Of a stretch of 64,000 nucleotides of DNA, positions 1,510-25,624 are shown one piece after another. Source of the stretch: Bugula neritina (Eukaryota; Animalia; Bryozoa); NCBI GenBank assembly GCA_964035545.1, contig OZ037772.1:7300889-7364888 (forward strand), read 5' to 3'. A program made the position numbers and the translations under genes. Below the pieces are notes generated by a model that worked only from the letters and a program-made list of their open reading frames with translations, did no database searches and was not told the origin of the DNA. How positions within the stretch are numbered: the first letter of the stretch is position 1; the number at the start of each line of letters is the position of its first letter.

Positions 1510-4500
1510 TTAATAACTACAGTCATGATAAACTCTATAGGTATCTCTAGTATGTTGGCCACACCCTCTCTGTAGACACAAAATCTCTTCGTAAAGTTGT
1601 ATGTGATTTGAATACAGTCCTTCCCGGGAGATGTTCTGGAGCTACAAGAAATATTACATAAAATATAATGTAACTTTTAGCTGTGGTCTAGGGGTTAGAG
1701 CGTTTGCCTAGTAAACATGAAGGTCATGGGTTCGAGCCCAGACAAAGGCCATTGGTGATGTTAGGAAGAGCATCCAGTCATAACTGCTCCTGTGCCTCAT
1801 TTAAATAAGTCCTTAGCCCGCTTTAACAAAAACCCTTTTTATCAGGGGTTTCTCACAGGGATAGTGACTATAAACTTGCGTGAGTTTTTTTATATGTAAC
1901 TTTTAGCTCTCTAAAATAAAAAAGCTCATGTTAGATTATAGCCACAATTCCTGTGAGAAACCTAATGAAAAGGGTCATTTGAGTAGGCTAAGGACTTGCT
2001 TTCTATTGTGACAAAAAAACAATTAAGACTGAATGACTGAATTCTAGATTTTATTATAAATTTATTATTTAACCAGTATTGGCCAAATTAATTGGCAGAA
2101 ATTTTTAGGTCAAACTGGAATCAGCCATAAAGTTATGAGTAAAATAATGTGTACAGTTGTCATGTTGGTTAGCACGCCTGCTTGCAAGCCCCAGGTCTCC
2201 GGTTCAATGCCCAGTGAAAGGGGGGGGGCAATTATTCTATTTGTAAGTATAGGAAGTGTTTAGTTATCTATTTGGTTATAAAATTGCACTAAATACACTA
2301 AAGTTATTAAACTATCTTTCATCGAAAATAAAAATCTTTTGAACAAAGACTATGAACTAATTTGAGAGTATTAAATCAACTGCAAGTCTTTACGGATACT
2401 TACAGAATATCCATCCTGATCACAATCTTCCGTCACTCCAAGTTGTATCAGGTTCATGATAATGTCTACACTTTGACTCAAGTAGTTAAAGGAGACATTC
2501 AAGTCACCGTACTCTGTTTCCAAGTAACACTTGTGACGCTGTAGTCTCTCTACCACACTTCCTCTTCTGCTCTGTAAGCATACAGCACAACAAAGTTTCT
2601 CATTGGCTACAACTGAATATACGGCCTATGATGTGAACTTACAATGAATTTTTTGTCAGCTCATTAAATTAGCAAAATAGTTATTCCTTAAATTACTTTA
2701 AAGAAAGATAAATTGAAGTTTGGTGGTGCATCTCATGTATTTAAAAGTATTTATATGTTGTATCAGAGGAGTTCTACAAAGGAAAATTCGTTTTAATTTT
2801 AGCAACTCTTCATATACTTAAGTTTAAAATGCTGAATATTCAGTAACATTATAATTCTTATTTTCTATACACATATCAATAATATGAACACAAATAATAC
2901 TATAACTATAATTACATAATATATGTATATTATATTATTAATTATATTATATTATGTTATTAGCAAAACACTATTTATATTATAAATTTTGTATTATAAT
3001 AGATATTATATATACTACTAAATATATTAAATATATTTCTATCAGAACATTAAATTATTATGAGCATATACAGTTTCGTTACCTGAACACTGTAGCAGTT
3101 CAAAGCTCTTGATGTACGTGATTGTGTTCCATGAACACATAACTCATTTCTCTGAAAATTATGAGAAGATAATCAGTATAGTTATAAGCCGTTTAAACTT
3201 TTAACAAACACAATATTTGCTCTAAAATCTGGCCAACTATAAAATGTTTCATGAGTTTTCTACAAATCAGATAATTGAGTTCAACTGCTTAATATAACAT
3301 TATTATACGAAGAAAAATATACACAACATGTCTATCAGGGTAGATGCTCACTAGTTTCACAGTGTTGTATTTTCACAGTCTTTCTTGTGGTGTAGTGGTT
3401 AATGAGTCTGCATGCAGGCTAGAAGTCTCTGGTTCGAATCCCGGTAAAAGCAATTTTTTTATTTGAGTTGCACTGCTAGTCCAAAACAATAATGTAACAC
3501 AGTGATAAGACTTACAGCAAAGTGGTTAGCTAAGTGTTTAATTTCCCTGTGAGCTTGAGCTAGTTCTCTGCCAGCCACTTCACCACAGAGGAAACTTGAT
3601 GCAGATCTTCTATTTCTAGAAACTTCTGTGCTATTTCTAAAATTAGCCATTACTGATTGTTTTAAACAGGAGTAAATTTTACACAGAGTCAGTTGCAAAT
3701 CCTTATATATAAAAATAGACTTGATAGTTTTCTTTACTCAATTTTTTTAATGTTTATCCTAGCTTACTGATCAAAAACTAAAGTTTAATTTTTTTCAATC
3801 TTCGTCAGCGTACCCGATACCGAAAGAGTTTCAACTTAGTCAATTTTAACTTAGTGCAGTCCTCTATGTAGCATTTTATAAATATATTTATTGCTGTTGT
3901 GCGTGAAAGAACAACTACCGTTAATAAGGCAGATTAAAATTTTAAGAATTTATTTGTAGAAAAATAAAATGATTTATTTAAAACTTATGAGTTTCATAGT
4001 CAAAAGAATAGTTTTTAAATTGGGATACTTAAGAGATGTTTTGTATGTTGTCAAAATTCAATACTTGTCATGTTAAAATAAATGTAGAAGAAACTTTTTT
4101 AACTGAAATATAGTTTTGTGGAAGCTTTAGTTACATATTGAGTTGCTATAATATAAAGTATATATAGGCTACTAAAAATATTTTATTTGGTTTGTTATAC
4201 AACTTCTTTCTTATACAGCTACTTTTAGGTTATGTAATAAATATTTGGAAATACCTGTGAGAAGTTTGAGTGTTGATAGATGCCAGTTCCACTGCTGTTA
4301 TGTAACACATGACTAGAACAAGTTTTAAATTATCTAAAACAAGATAATATTATGCAATGTAGAATAAACTATATTGAAACTTTTGTATAAATATTGTGAA
4401 CAATTTTAGCTGGGAGAAAATCAAAATTATTTTGCTCATTCTTGTTATTTTCCAAAATTAGTGACAACCTTCAAAATTGCTTTTCAATATATTATTGTAT

Positions 4501-4574
4501 AAGCAATTATCAATTCGCAATTATCCTTTGGGTTATTCGAAAAAGTTTAAAAGCATTATAAAAGACTTACCCAT
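1510..4574 (-). CDS. Secreted Cys-rich helical protein, paralog 1 (190 aa; candidate four-helix cytokine-like precursor)
   Basis: Exons 4574-4571, 4333-4255, 3636-3516, 3151-3083, 2571-2404, 1641-1510; all GT-AG; phases 1,2,0,0,0. Open frame: MDNLKLVLVMCYITAVELASINTQTSHRNSTEVSRNRR/SASSFLCGEVAGRELAQAHREIKHLANHFARNELCVHGTQSRTSRALNCYSVQSRRGSVVERLQRHKCYLETEYGDLNVSFNYLSQSVDIIMNLIQLGVTEDCDQDGYSLQNISREGLYSNHIQLYEEILCLQRGCGQHTRDTYRVYHDCSY*. The same exon structure occurs in two paralogs. Gene model is well supported; function is inference. Confidence 0.9.
1679..1891 (+). mobile_element. tRNA(Thr-AGT)-derived SINE, family 1
   Basis: A-box/B-box head (gtggtctaggggttagagcg...ctagtaaac...ggttcgagccc), ~140-bp body, T tail, TSD atgtaacttttagct. 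Confidence 0.88.
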
Positions 4575-4671
4575 AGTAAAAATGTATGTTAGTTAAATAT
4601 TAACTATATCAGACTCTCCAAGTTGTTTTCAAACTAAGATTTTGCTTTGTTAAGTCTACAGAACTTTGCAA

Positions 4672-22943: not shown

Positions 22944-23321
22944 TATATATATATATATATATATATATATATATATATATATATATATATATATATATAT
23001 ATATATATATATATATATATATATATATATATATATATATATATATATATATATATACATTATTGAACTGTGCAAGGACCAGTGATAAGGTGAATAGATA
23101 TATAAGTCAATATTATTGGTATATAAAAAGACAACAAAAACACAAACACATATATAAGAGAGAATATCTATATATATAATAATATTTTTTATTTTTATTA
23201 ATAACGTTGCTCTATATGAACTGTGTAAGGACCAGTAAAAAGTAAATTATATATATATGTATATATATATATATATATATATATATATATATATATATAT
23301 ATATATATATAATATATATAT
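22944..23321. repeat. (TA)n microsatellites downstream of paralog 3
   Basis: Runs at ~22944-23057 and ~23249-23321. Confidence 0.95.
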
Positions 23322-23337
23322 GTTAATATCATTTTGG

Positions 23338-25624
23338 TTAGTTACAACTTTGGTAGACTCTAAAAGTACTTCCAGTGTAATAACCACACCCCTTCTGTAG
23401 ACACAGGATCATCTCATAAAGCTGCTCGTGATGTAAATACAGTCCATTCCGGGACACACCTTGAAGCTGCAATACAAGTCACAGGGTAGATAACTCCTAA
23501 ATCTCCAGATACAACAATTGGTTTCTTTTTCTGACATGATTTTGAAACAATTATTTATAGAAAATATTAAACTGTTTGAAACCTCAGACTTTCAGTTTAG
23601 GATTTGAAGTCAAACTGTAATCAGCAAAAAGTAAAATACAGCAAAATTTTTATAAGTGATATAATAATTAGTTTTTGAAATATATTGCATAAAATTTTAA
23701 AAATTGTAATTGCTACAATATATTTTATAATGTATATGTCAAAGTAAACTATTATTCATGAGTTTATTATAGTGGCTGTTATTGTTTTTAATAGAAAATT
23801 TAAACTTTTAAAGATATGACTTGAAAATTTATAAACATGATTTAAAATAAAACAATTAATTAAATATTGTATTAATATTGTATTAGAACAAAGACTCTTA
23901 CAGTAACAGGATCTTCTTCACATGACTCATTCACACTGCCATCAACCAGATGTCTGATAATGTCGACACTCTGACTCAGGTGGTTGAAACAAGTGTTCAT
24001 GTCACTATATTCTGCCTCCAGGTGACATTTGTGATGTTTTAGTCTTTCTACTATGTTCACACTTCCATCCTATAATATACAGAAATGACAAGTTATAATC
24101 CTATTGTTTCAATAATATACCTGGTATAGTTTATATATAGGGTCTATGATTCAATGCTTTGTTTACTACTGGTACTTTAATTAAAACAATTGAAGACGAA
24201 AAATTTTTTTGTAGGTTTAGTTGCTTGTTGTCCATGATAAGAACCTAAATAAGTACATGCAGTATTTTTCCATTACTTGAAAGAATTTAGTTCAGTTTTC
24301 TAAAAGGACGTAAAATACATCTCTAAAAATGCTCACAAACTATTCATTTTAAAAACATTTTATTAGTAAAATTTATTAAAAAAATTTTGTGAAAAATTAT
24401 AATATTATAGAATGAGATTATATATTGACCTGAATAGCAGCGCAGTTCAAAGTTCGTAAAGTATGTGATGGAGTTCCATGAGCACACAACTCTGTTCTCT
24501 GAAAATACAAAAATAGAAGAATTGTCTAAAAATGTTGATTGAAAATAGTCATTACATAGTAGTGTTTCAAATGCAAATCTAAAATGTTTAAAACCTGTGC
24601 TTCTTAGAATTATGAATTCACAGAACAATAAGCTTAAAAAAAATATTTATATAACATTAAATGAAGGACTAAATGAACCAACATACTGAGTTTTAAAGTA
24701 AATGAAACATATTGTGATAAATTTCGCTAAATCTCTACTCCAAAAAACCCAATAAAGTTAGGATAAAATTCTACCAATACTTTTATACAAATATGAGAAA
24801 TGTTCATGTTTGGAGCGCTAATAATGTGTTTATTTTCAATAATTATCACAAAACTATCACGAACTTAAAATGTCATACTAAACTTTTTACCAGCGCCAAG
24901 TCTCCATTATAGAACTTATAACAGGTAGCTAAAAGGCATGTAATATAACATTGCATGCTCTCAATTGGAACATCAGTAATCAAGTTAGTAACAAAAAGTT
25001 TGCTTTTTCAAGCAATTAGAATCTGAGTAATTGTATGGTGAATATTATATAATAACAGAACTTACAACAAAACGAGTGGACAAGTGCTTTATTTCTCTGT
25101 GTGCCTGAGCTAGTTCTATTCTACCCACAAAGCCACATAAGTGTCCTGGTACAGATCTTCTATTTCTAGAAACTTTTTCGCTGCTACTATTTCTAAAATT
25201 ATTCAAGTTTCTTAGTATTTATTTATGATTCTGCTTACAAGCACTGCAGTAAAAGGTTTATTTACAAATTGGCCTAAACTAATATTATTTATAAAATATT
25301 CTCATTATTTGATCAGCTAAATCTGACAGTGATATAAACTTAAAACTTTCTGAATTTTATCAACTAATTACCATGCAAATAGTGTGAAAATTAAAAAAAA
25401 TTCTTTTAGATTATTATAATACCTTTGAGATGTTTGAGTGCTGATAGCTGCCAGTTCAACAGCTGTTATGCAACATAGGATCAGAAAAAGGTTTAAGTTA
25501 TCTAAAACAAAGAAATAATATAATTAATGCAATTTTTTATTTATATATTATTACAAGTAATGTTTTTCTGTCTTATAGTTTGATTCACCTAAAAAATACA
25601 TAAAGAATGGTAAAACTTACCCAT
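23338..25624 (-). CDS. Secreted Cys-rich helical protein, paralog 3 (191 aa)
   Basis: Exons 25624-25621, 25501-25423, 25192-25066, 24498-24430, 24069-23902, 23466-23338. MDNLNLFLILCCITAVELAAISTQTSQRNSSSEKVSRNRR/SVPGHLCGFVGRIELAQAHREIKHLSTRFVRTELCAHGTPSHTLRTLNCAAIQDGSVNIVERLKHHKCHLEAEY...LCLQKGCGYYTGSTFRVYQSCN*. The last three exons are nearly identical to paralog 2. Confidence 0.9.

Follow-up and report, generated by a model that had tools for sequence, protein, structure and literature searches.

Candidate secreted helical ligands encoded by a tandem gene family in the bryozoan Bugula neritina

Introduction

What do three closely spaced and similarly built genes on one contig of the bryozoan Bugula neritina encode? 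The genes, named g1, g2 and g3, lie in a 64,000-nucleotide stretch of DNA (positions 7,300,889 to 7,364,888 of contig OZ037772.1, assembly GCA_964035545.1; C8:7300889-7364888 in our contig numbering), referred to here as the window, and the genome to which it belongs was searched as 216 Mb in 321 contigs. An earlier note on this DNA had read the genes as a tandem family of secreted proteins with the gene signature of four-helix-bundle cytokines, and had proposed that they encode either ligands of a gp130/Domeless-like receptor or a new hormone family. The cytokine hypothesis is plausible but unproven, and it is the main reason for interest in the family. From the gene models, genome and database searches and structure predictions described below, we lean towards extracellular ligands that form a lineage-restricted family and are secreted, processed by a convertase, mostly helical and held by four disulfides. 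The rationale for this reading is the prepro architecture of the products, the purifying selection acting on orthologs and the divergence between paralogs.

Three intact six-exon genes

Reading the window in three frames and joining the exons by hand at canonical splice sites resolves g1, g2 and g3 as three intact six-exon genes on the minus strand, in which all 15 introns are of the GT...AG type. The open frames comprise 190, 191 and 191 codons, giving products of 190, 191 and 191 residues, and the start-to-start distances are 10.29 and 10.76 kb, so that the three paralogs spaced at about 10.3 and 10.8 kb in the earlier note are recovered from the minus strand as described. Coding exon 1 (g1, 4571-4574; g2, 14861-14864; g3, 25621-25624) is ATG-G alone, reads ATGG/GTAAGT across the splice junction in each gene and thereby places intron 1 in phase 1; the wider context ACTATGG/GTAAGT is kept in all three genes and in a contig from a close relative (L004, described below). 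Exon 2 (g1, 4255-4333; g2, 14656-14734; g3, 25423-25501) measures 79 nt, carries a hydrophobic segment that resembles a signal peptide on inspection (in g1 the core is LVLVMCYITAV, the exon is bounded by an AG acceptor and a GT donor, and the pro-region begins within it) and ends in phase 2. Intron 2 is therefore a phase 2 intron within the pro-region, which corrects the first reading.

Exon 3 (g1, 3516-3636; g2, 14281-14407; g3, 25066-25192) encodes a short polar segment that completes the pro-region, followed by a basic site (RNRR in g1 and g3, RNKR in g2), the first cysteine and the invariant ELAQAHREI stretch of proposed helix A, which has alpha-type periodicity in the family alignment. 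The remaining exons meet at phase 0 joints, and all three introns within the mature chain are in phase 0. Exon 4 (g1, 3083-3151; g2, 12870-12938; g3, 24430-24498) is 69 nt or 23 codons long, is in phase 0 at both ends and encodes the putative loop between helices A and B with Cys2 and Cys3; it is here that prolines and indels occur among the paralogs. Exon 5 (g1, 2404-2571; g2, 12380-12547; g3, 23902-24069) is 168 nt long and encodes proposed helices B and C with Cys4 and Cys5. Exon 6 (g1, 1510-1641; g2, 11846-11974; g3, 23338-23466), of 129-132 nt, encodes the putative C-D loop, proposed helix D, a C-terminal cysteine cluster (CLQRGCG in g1, with Cys6-8 in this exon) and the stop codon. Downstream of the basic site, the chain is 151-152 residues long with eight invariant cysteines, and a ninth is present in g2 and g3. 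The features that had been read from the letters, namely the ATG-G first exon, the phase 0 introns of the mature region, the signal peptide, the RNRR or RNKR end of the propeptide, the eight invariant cysteines and the four quoted amphipathic motifs, are thus all present in g1-g3.

A wider family at three loci

Are these three genes the whole family? Searching the genome with exon 5 as a single sequence returned three copies only, those of g1-g3. Profiles of exons 5 and 6 gave additional weak matches that adjoin each other in the right order and orientation, and from these, four more divergent paralogs were modelled by hand: g4 on contig C4 and g5, g6 and g7 on C3. The family therefore comprises at least seven genes at three loci (contigs C8, C4 and C3). 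The description of a family of three tandem genes stands for the three copies and is too narrow for the family, which has at least four more paralogs on two other contigs. Weak profile matches, when taken exon by exon and found in the right order, can evidently reveal divergent paralogs.

Exon 5 identity between the C8 copies and the C3/C4 copies is just 20-34%. Intron positions and phases (1,2,0,0,0) are common to all seven paralogs, AG and GT are found at every junction checked, the eight cysteines are in register, and the motif C-L-(Q/H)-x-x-C-G lies downstream of the last proposed helix in each. The signal peptides of g1-g6, as judged by inspection, consist of 4-8 polar residues followed by 11-16 mainly hydrophobic ones. 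A basic site stands directly before the conserved domain in six of the seven paralogs, g7 being the one that has none, and the g1 ortholog has RNRR. N-glycosylation sequons are located in loops of the family alignment.

Individual members vary upon this plan. The g4 gene (contig C4, L010) has ATG-A as exon 1, an exon 2 of 757 nt and a DKR site, followed by the usual four exons. This long exon (L010 2319-3075, minus strand) encodes about 230 residues of acidic tandem repeats made of EKSEKMEKDDEGIGS-like and EKSNESIDKIEVVEEIEDIYQIS-like units, and the repeats sit between the signal peptide and DKR as a greatly expanded pro-region. The genes g5, g6 and g7 fall within 13 kb of C3 (L011, L012); both g5 and g6 start with an ATG-G exon and encode a signal peptide and a basic site (KKR in g5, EKR in g6) that is followed by SVP or SVD. 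The g7 gene (L011 3911-5570, minus strand) begins about 170 nt past the g6 stop codon (L011 5878) and may serve g6 as a second domain reached by read-through or as an alternative 3' cassette.

Conservation and selection

A 60-residue open reading frame (ORF), P0001, led to a 6.6-kb Joint Genome Institute (JGI) metagenome contig from a close relative (L004), where P0001 proves to be the exon 5 ORF of a g1 ortholog. The contig is collinear with the g1 locus, with all six exons and their splice sites kept, and its identity to g1 is approximately 87-94% in exon windows (each with at most 25 nt of flank) versus approximately 82% in introns. Between g1 and this ortholog the synonymous divergence (dS) is 0.21, and the ratio of nonsynonymous to synonymous divergence (dN/dS) is 0.18 for the mature domain versus 0.61 for the signal and pro part. 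The mature domain is thus more constrained than the pro-region, which is the pattern of processed prohormones. A further contig from the close relative (P0006, L015) likewise preserves exons 4-6 of g7 intact, and their dN/dS is 0.14. Within the window, comparison of g1 with either g2 or g3 gives a dN/dS of 0.25-0.26, and the young g2-g3 pair gives 0.53. Because of these ratios and the retention of all six g1 exons in the close relative, the three-gene observation is confirmed as real and far beyond chance.

Searches for relatives

Does the family belong to any known class of proteins? Exon-by-exon comparison with Pfam returned sub-threshold noise only (NanE, DUF6086) and no cytokine family. 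Sequence and profile searches of the PDB with three- and eight-sequence exon profiles gave nothing below E = 0.2, and a feature search of the ESM Atlas with exon 5 gave no usable match. Among 1.84 billion representative proteins, the sole real match to the exon 5 profile was P0001; four other matches were rejected as repeat proteins (ankyrin and similar) with repeated short matches. The eight-sequence profile, run against 5.8 billion proteins limited to those of 31-98 residues, matched two ortholog fragments and nothing else. A metagenome pattern match (L005) was set aside as chance, because in this contig of 58% GC nothing but the searched pattern matches and the other exons of the family are lacking. 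The 11 neuropeptide or peptide-hormone precursors that have been extracted from transcriptome data of Bugula neritina (PMC4990251) do not include this family. The libraries searched hold few bryozoan data, and orphan here means not found outside Bugula with these searches. A match to a known unrelated family, which the earlier note had named as grounds for giving up its proposal, was found neither in Pfam nor in the PDB nor in the protein profile searches. The family is new and has so far been found only in Bugula.

Several known families were dropped on inspection of the cysteine pattern or predicted helicity, namely insulin-like proteins, MANF/CDNF, saposin-like proteins, CHH/ITP, PLA2, IL-17, cystine-knot ligands and hemerythrin or diiron bundles. 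For the cystine-knot and beta-rich ligands as a group (IL-17, Spaetzle/NGF, TGF-beta, PTTH/trunk), exons 5 and 6 are predicted to be helical and there is no Pfam match.

An orphan family that is known only from Bugula could also consist of secreted helical proteins that act outside the animal's own signalling, in defence or as antimicrobials, as toxins, waterborne pheromones or larval settlement cues, or in gamete recognition. Lineage-restricted tandem families with diversifying paralogs are typical of such classes, many toxins and pheromones likewise have a signal-propeptide-mature architecture, and tandem duplication with strong paralog divergence (the low exon 5 identity between loci) and the raised g2-g3 dN/dS fit this explanation. 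It is opposed by the dN/dS of 0.14-0.18 in the mature domain of orthologs, where gamete-recognition proteins and many toxins commonly evolve under positive selection instead, and by the finding that no toxin, antimicrobial-peptide or pheromone family of Pfam is matched; bryozoans, moreover, are not known to have protein venoms. We consider a role of this kind unlikely and continue to favour secreted ligands.

Predicted helices and their arrangement

In the eight-sequence alignment, gaps and clustered proline or glycine residues are confined to four places outside the proposed helices: before helix A, within the A-B segment of exon 4 (about 28 residues), at the link from B to C, and between C and D (about 20 residues). 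The B-C link has a four-residue deletion in g4, and in the other copies it contains Gly, Asn and Ser together with N-glycosylation sequons. Four blocks, each 16-19 columns long, have neither gaps nor Pro/Gly clusters; an alpha-type periodicity of hydrophobic residues is evident in A and C, incomplete in B and weak in D. The claim of four stretches in a long-short-long pattern is borne out by these four segments, and the sequence is consistent with four helices joined in that manner. AlphaFold predicts a helix at residues 6-45 of exon 5 alone (g2 copy, three-sequence alignment with g1 and g3) with a mean predicted local distance difference test (pLDDT) score of 76, and a helix at residues 6-25 followed by a weak hairpin in exon 6 alone (g1 copy, four-sequence alignment) with a pLDDT of 60. 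A long-short-long pattern of connections is what an up-up-down-down bundle needs. A four-helix bundle of some topology is the probable fold, and the up-up-down-down topology of cytokines is possible, with the balance somewhat on the side of doubt.

A number of observations weigh against the reading of the family as secreted helical ligands. The structure predictions cover exons 5 and 6 alone and four g1 exon pieces taken as separate chains. In the first of these, helices B and C are drawn as one continuous helix, and co-folding of the four g1 pieces gave an interaction prediction score from aligned errors (ipSAE) of 0.02, which counts neither way for a cytokine fold. The alpha periodicity of helices B and D falls short of that of A and C. 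The signal peptide and the cleavage site were called by eye rather than by a predictor, and g7 has neither a signal-peptide exon nor a basic site of its own. Concerning expression, no RNA run with g3 was found, and the sole run with the locus, X1, is taken to be genomic DNA of another individual because its contigs span introns as well as exons without splice joints.

The continuous 40-residue helix drawn for exon 5 raises the question of whether the products are secreted ligands of another helical fold, such as an up-down-up-down bundle, a three-helix protein with one long B-C helix, or a disulfide-stapled domain like that of saposin or CHH. By our reasoning, the eight cysteines are placed such that an all-antiparallel bundle and an up-up-down-down bundle could accommodate them equally well. 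A break between B and C is argued for by the g4 indel and the Gly/Asn/Ser-rich, glycosylated link, the long A-B and C-D connections would be unnecessary in a plain antiparallel bundle, and on inspection the cysteine spacing is unlike the saposin and CHH patterns. Such a fold is a rather doubtful alternative, and a slightly better one than the non-signalling roles considered above.

The missing RNA evidence would also suit non-functional sequence, either unexpressed relics or chance open frames. Against this stand seven paralogs and two orthologs with intact frames, conserved splice sites and dN/dS values well below 1, as well as exon conservation well above that of introns, and we regard this explanation as highly improbable. 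The favoured reading of a functional family of secreted, mostly helical ligands is retained in what follows.

JAK/STAT components in the genome

If the products were cytokines, a receptor and a signalling pathway would be expected to accompany them. Exon-wise Pfam scanning of the genome found STAT_bind exons at two loci (42 and 36 bits) and one exon that matches only JAK-type FERM_F2, with 35-37 bits and above the cut-off; the JAK-type FERM_F2 exon and the STAT DNA-binding-domain exons are located at C1:14547879-14548130, C4:3714168-3714910 and C5:11198359-11198481. A JAK/STAT core thus seems to be present in the Bugula genome. A weak FERM_F1 match (L008) was rejected as not JAK-like on inspection. 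The same scans, which are insensitive, found neither Jak1_Phl nor SH2_1, nor any cytokine-receptor homology domain (nothing for IL6Ra-bind; Lep_receptor_Ig at E = 0.04, below the cut-off).

The FERM_F2 and STAT_bind exons argue in favour of a cytokine, and the missing receptor domain is a weak negative on the other side. A 2026 survey places IL-6-family ligands in vertebrates only and names insect Upd and one shrimp lectin as the only ligands of Domeless-type receptors in invertebrates (PMC13203501). With IL-6-type ligands unknown in invertebrates apart from insect Upd, an orphan pathway may await its ligand. That the Bugula family supplies a ligand of a class I cytokine receptor is nevertheless improbable on the evidence at hand.

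Surroundings of the gene cluster

The window is AT-rich, with approximately 30% GC in its first 30 kb, and contains many microsatellites and repeats resembling short interspersed nuclear elements (SINEs). A dispersed repeat of about 210 nt, with 77-95% identity between copies and present on both strands, is found in introns and intergenic DNA of the cluster (1679-1896, 6641-6866, 13168-13241 with 14035-14178, 19900-20119, 27417-27634, 30248-30452 and 50227-50446) and probably represents a SINE. At 9.0-9.4 kb and 20.1-20.7 kb there are long (CA)n and (GA)n arrays, and a reverse-transcriptase-like ORF between g1 and g2 (10600-11400) may be a fragment of a non-LTR (long terminal repeat) element. 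The X1 contigs have g2-like bases in g3 exon 4 at 24435, 24458 and 24463, which reflect either polymorphism or gene conversion between g2 and g3, and a 2-nt indel at 25623 within a TATAT run that leaves the g3 ATG unaffected.

Beyond the family, a cluster of genes with long ankyrin-repeat ORFs occupies 34000-64000 (37190-40504, 43638-45365 and 59267-61588), and no link between it and the g1-g3 family was seen. A GC-rich block (about 0.5) at 46400-49200 holds long ORFs that resemble the gag and reverse transcriptase of an LTR retroelement. Two weak matches to a tRNA model (30-34 bits), at 53443-53514 and 53669-53740 on the minus strand and 226 nt apart, may be heads of tRNA-derived repeats rather than genes.

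Discussion

How would such proteins work? An N-terminal signal peptide would direct the chain into the secretory pathway, and the fast-evolving pro-segment, short except in g4, that ends at a basic convertase site (RNRR, RNKR, KKR, EKR or DKR) would be removed by a convertase of the furin/PC type. The mature domain of about 150 residues would hold four disulfides and consist mainly of four amphipathic helices in long-short-long connection, which may pack against each other as discussed above. We hypothesize that cells secrete the mature glycoprotein as an extracellular ligand, which works in the manner of a hormone, growth factor or cytokine, and that the paralogs have diversified in receptor or tissue specificity. 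Of the two proposals in the earlier note, that of a new hormone family is a fair description: these are real, conserved genes of secreted type with a convertase site and a layout like that of growth hormone (GH).

The cytokine proposal would have the wider consequences. In its strongest form, the family would represent the first class I helical cytokines of lophotrochozoans, with an ancestral exon-to-helix layout shared with GH and prolactin (PRL), and the missing ligand of the JAK/STAT pathway; we give this a small chance. If it were true, helical cytokine ligands would have originated at or before the bilaterian ancestor. Cytokine ligands are believed to diverge too quickly to be recognized by sequence similarity, and the Bugula family offers a specific candidate for folding, expression and testing. 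Should the cytokine reading prove wrong, this would still be a new family of processed, protein-hormone-like molecules, among few known signalling molecules of bryozoans, a phylum with almost no molecular endocrinology.

Comparison with known systems

The invertebrate prohormones (insulin-like, CHH/ITP, PTTH/trunk and glycoprotein hormones) share with the Bugula family a signal peptide, a pro-segment, a basic site and a cysteine-rich mature domain, which is more constrained than the pro part, and they too form multigene families. The cysteine pattern, size and predicted helicity of the Bugula products fit none of them. Drosophila Upd1-3 are similar in forming a small, clustered, fast-evolving and lineage-restricted family of secreted, predicted-helical proteins, and a JAK/STAT core in the genome is a further likeness. 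No Pfam family was matched, and hence not Unpaired either, provided that Pfam has a model of it. The Upd proteins are also larger and are not known to depend on the removal of a propeptide.

Class II cytokines comprise six to seven helices with just two to three disulfides. Among them, the IFNL2/3 genes have six exons, with a very short first coding exon that splits a codon after one base and all other introns in phase 0 (PMC2654155), a layout that counts in favour of the cytokine reading of the Bugula genes. The six exons and tiny phase 1 first coding exon are thus shared with IFNL2/3 of the IL-10/IFN-lambda group, and the phase 2 intron 2 and lack of sequence similarity set the Bugula family apart.

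The closest comparison is with the class I helical cytokines, exemplified by GH/PRL and IL-6/G-CSF, which fold up-up-down-down and in this case would bind a gp130/Domeless-like receptor and activate JAK/STAT. The class I gene layout is found in all seven paralogs and is a soft, non-diagnostic feature. The gene signature put forward in the earlier note holds insofar as the layout parallels that of GH, and its argument from intron phase carries little weight because most introns of any gene class tend to be in phase 0, the most frequent phase, with three consecutive phase 0 introns expected by chance in about one gene in ten. Phase 1 introns near signal peptides are, in addition, common in genes for secreted proteins. 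Neither Pfam nor the PDB yielded a cytokine family, GH and PRL included, that resembles these proteins in sequence or profile, and a conserved, convertase-cleaved propeptide together with four disulfides is untypical of class I cytokines. The Bugula products have eight cysteines versus four to six in GH/PRL and proposed helices of about 16-19 residues versus about 21-30 in GH, and unlike GH they have the predicted convertase-cleaved propeptide and an extra intron that parts the signal and pro segments from helix A. Membership of this class is accordingly a minority reading to which we assign little weight, next to the family of secreted helical ligands that we favour.

GH/PRL and the Bugula products are both secreted proteins of about 150-190 residues, in which helices A and B, like C and D, are joined by a long connection and B and C by a short one, an arrangement proposed for the Bugula family around its four gap-free segments and established for GH. 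The first exon of GH1 comprises ATG plus seven bases and ends in phase 1, its exon 4 (residues 72-126) encodes helices 2 and 3, and its exon 5 encodes the long loop, helix 4 and a small C-terminal cysteine loop. Following helix D, this loop is C-x4-C-G in the Bugula family versus C-x6-C-G in human GH. In human GH, exon 3 corresponds precisely to the loop that joins helix 1 to helix 2 (residues 32-71), and Cys53 of this loop forms a pair with Cys165 in helix 4 (PMC11817076). Likewise, the Bugula genes have a tiny first coding exon in phase 1 with the introns of the mature part in phase 0, the proposed A-B loop in a cysteine-bearing exon of its own (exon 4, with two cysteines), a single exon of 51-56 codons for proposed helices B and C, and a last exon for the C-D loop and helix D. 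This match in exon layout, which extends to the cysteines of the A-B loop exon and of helix D, makes the exon-to-helix parallel with GH suggestive, if soft.

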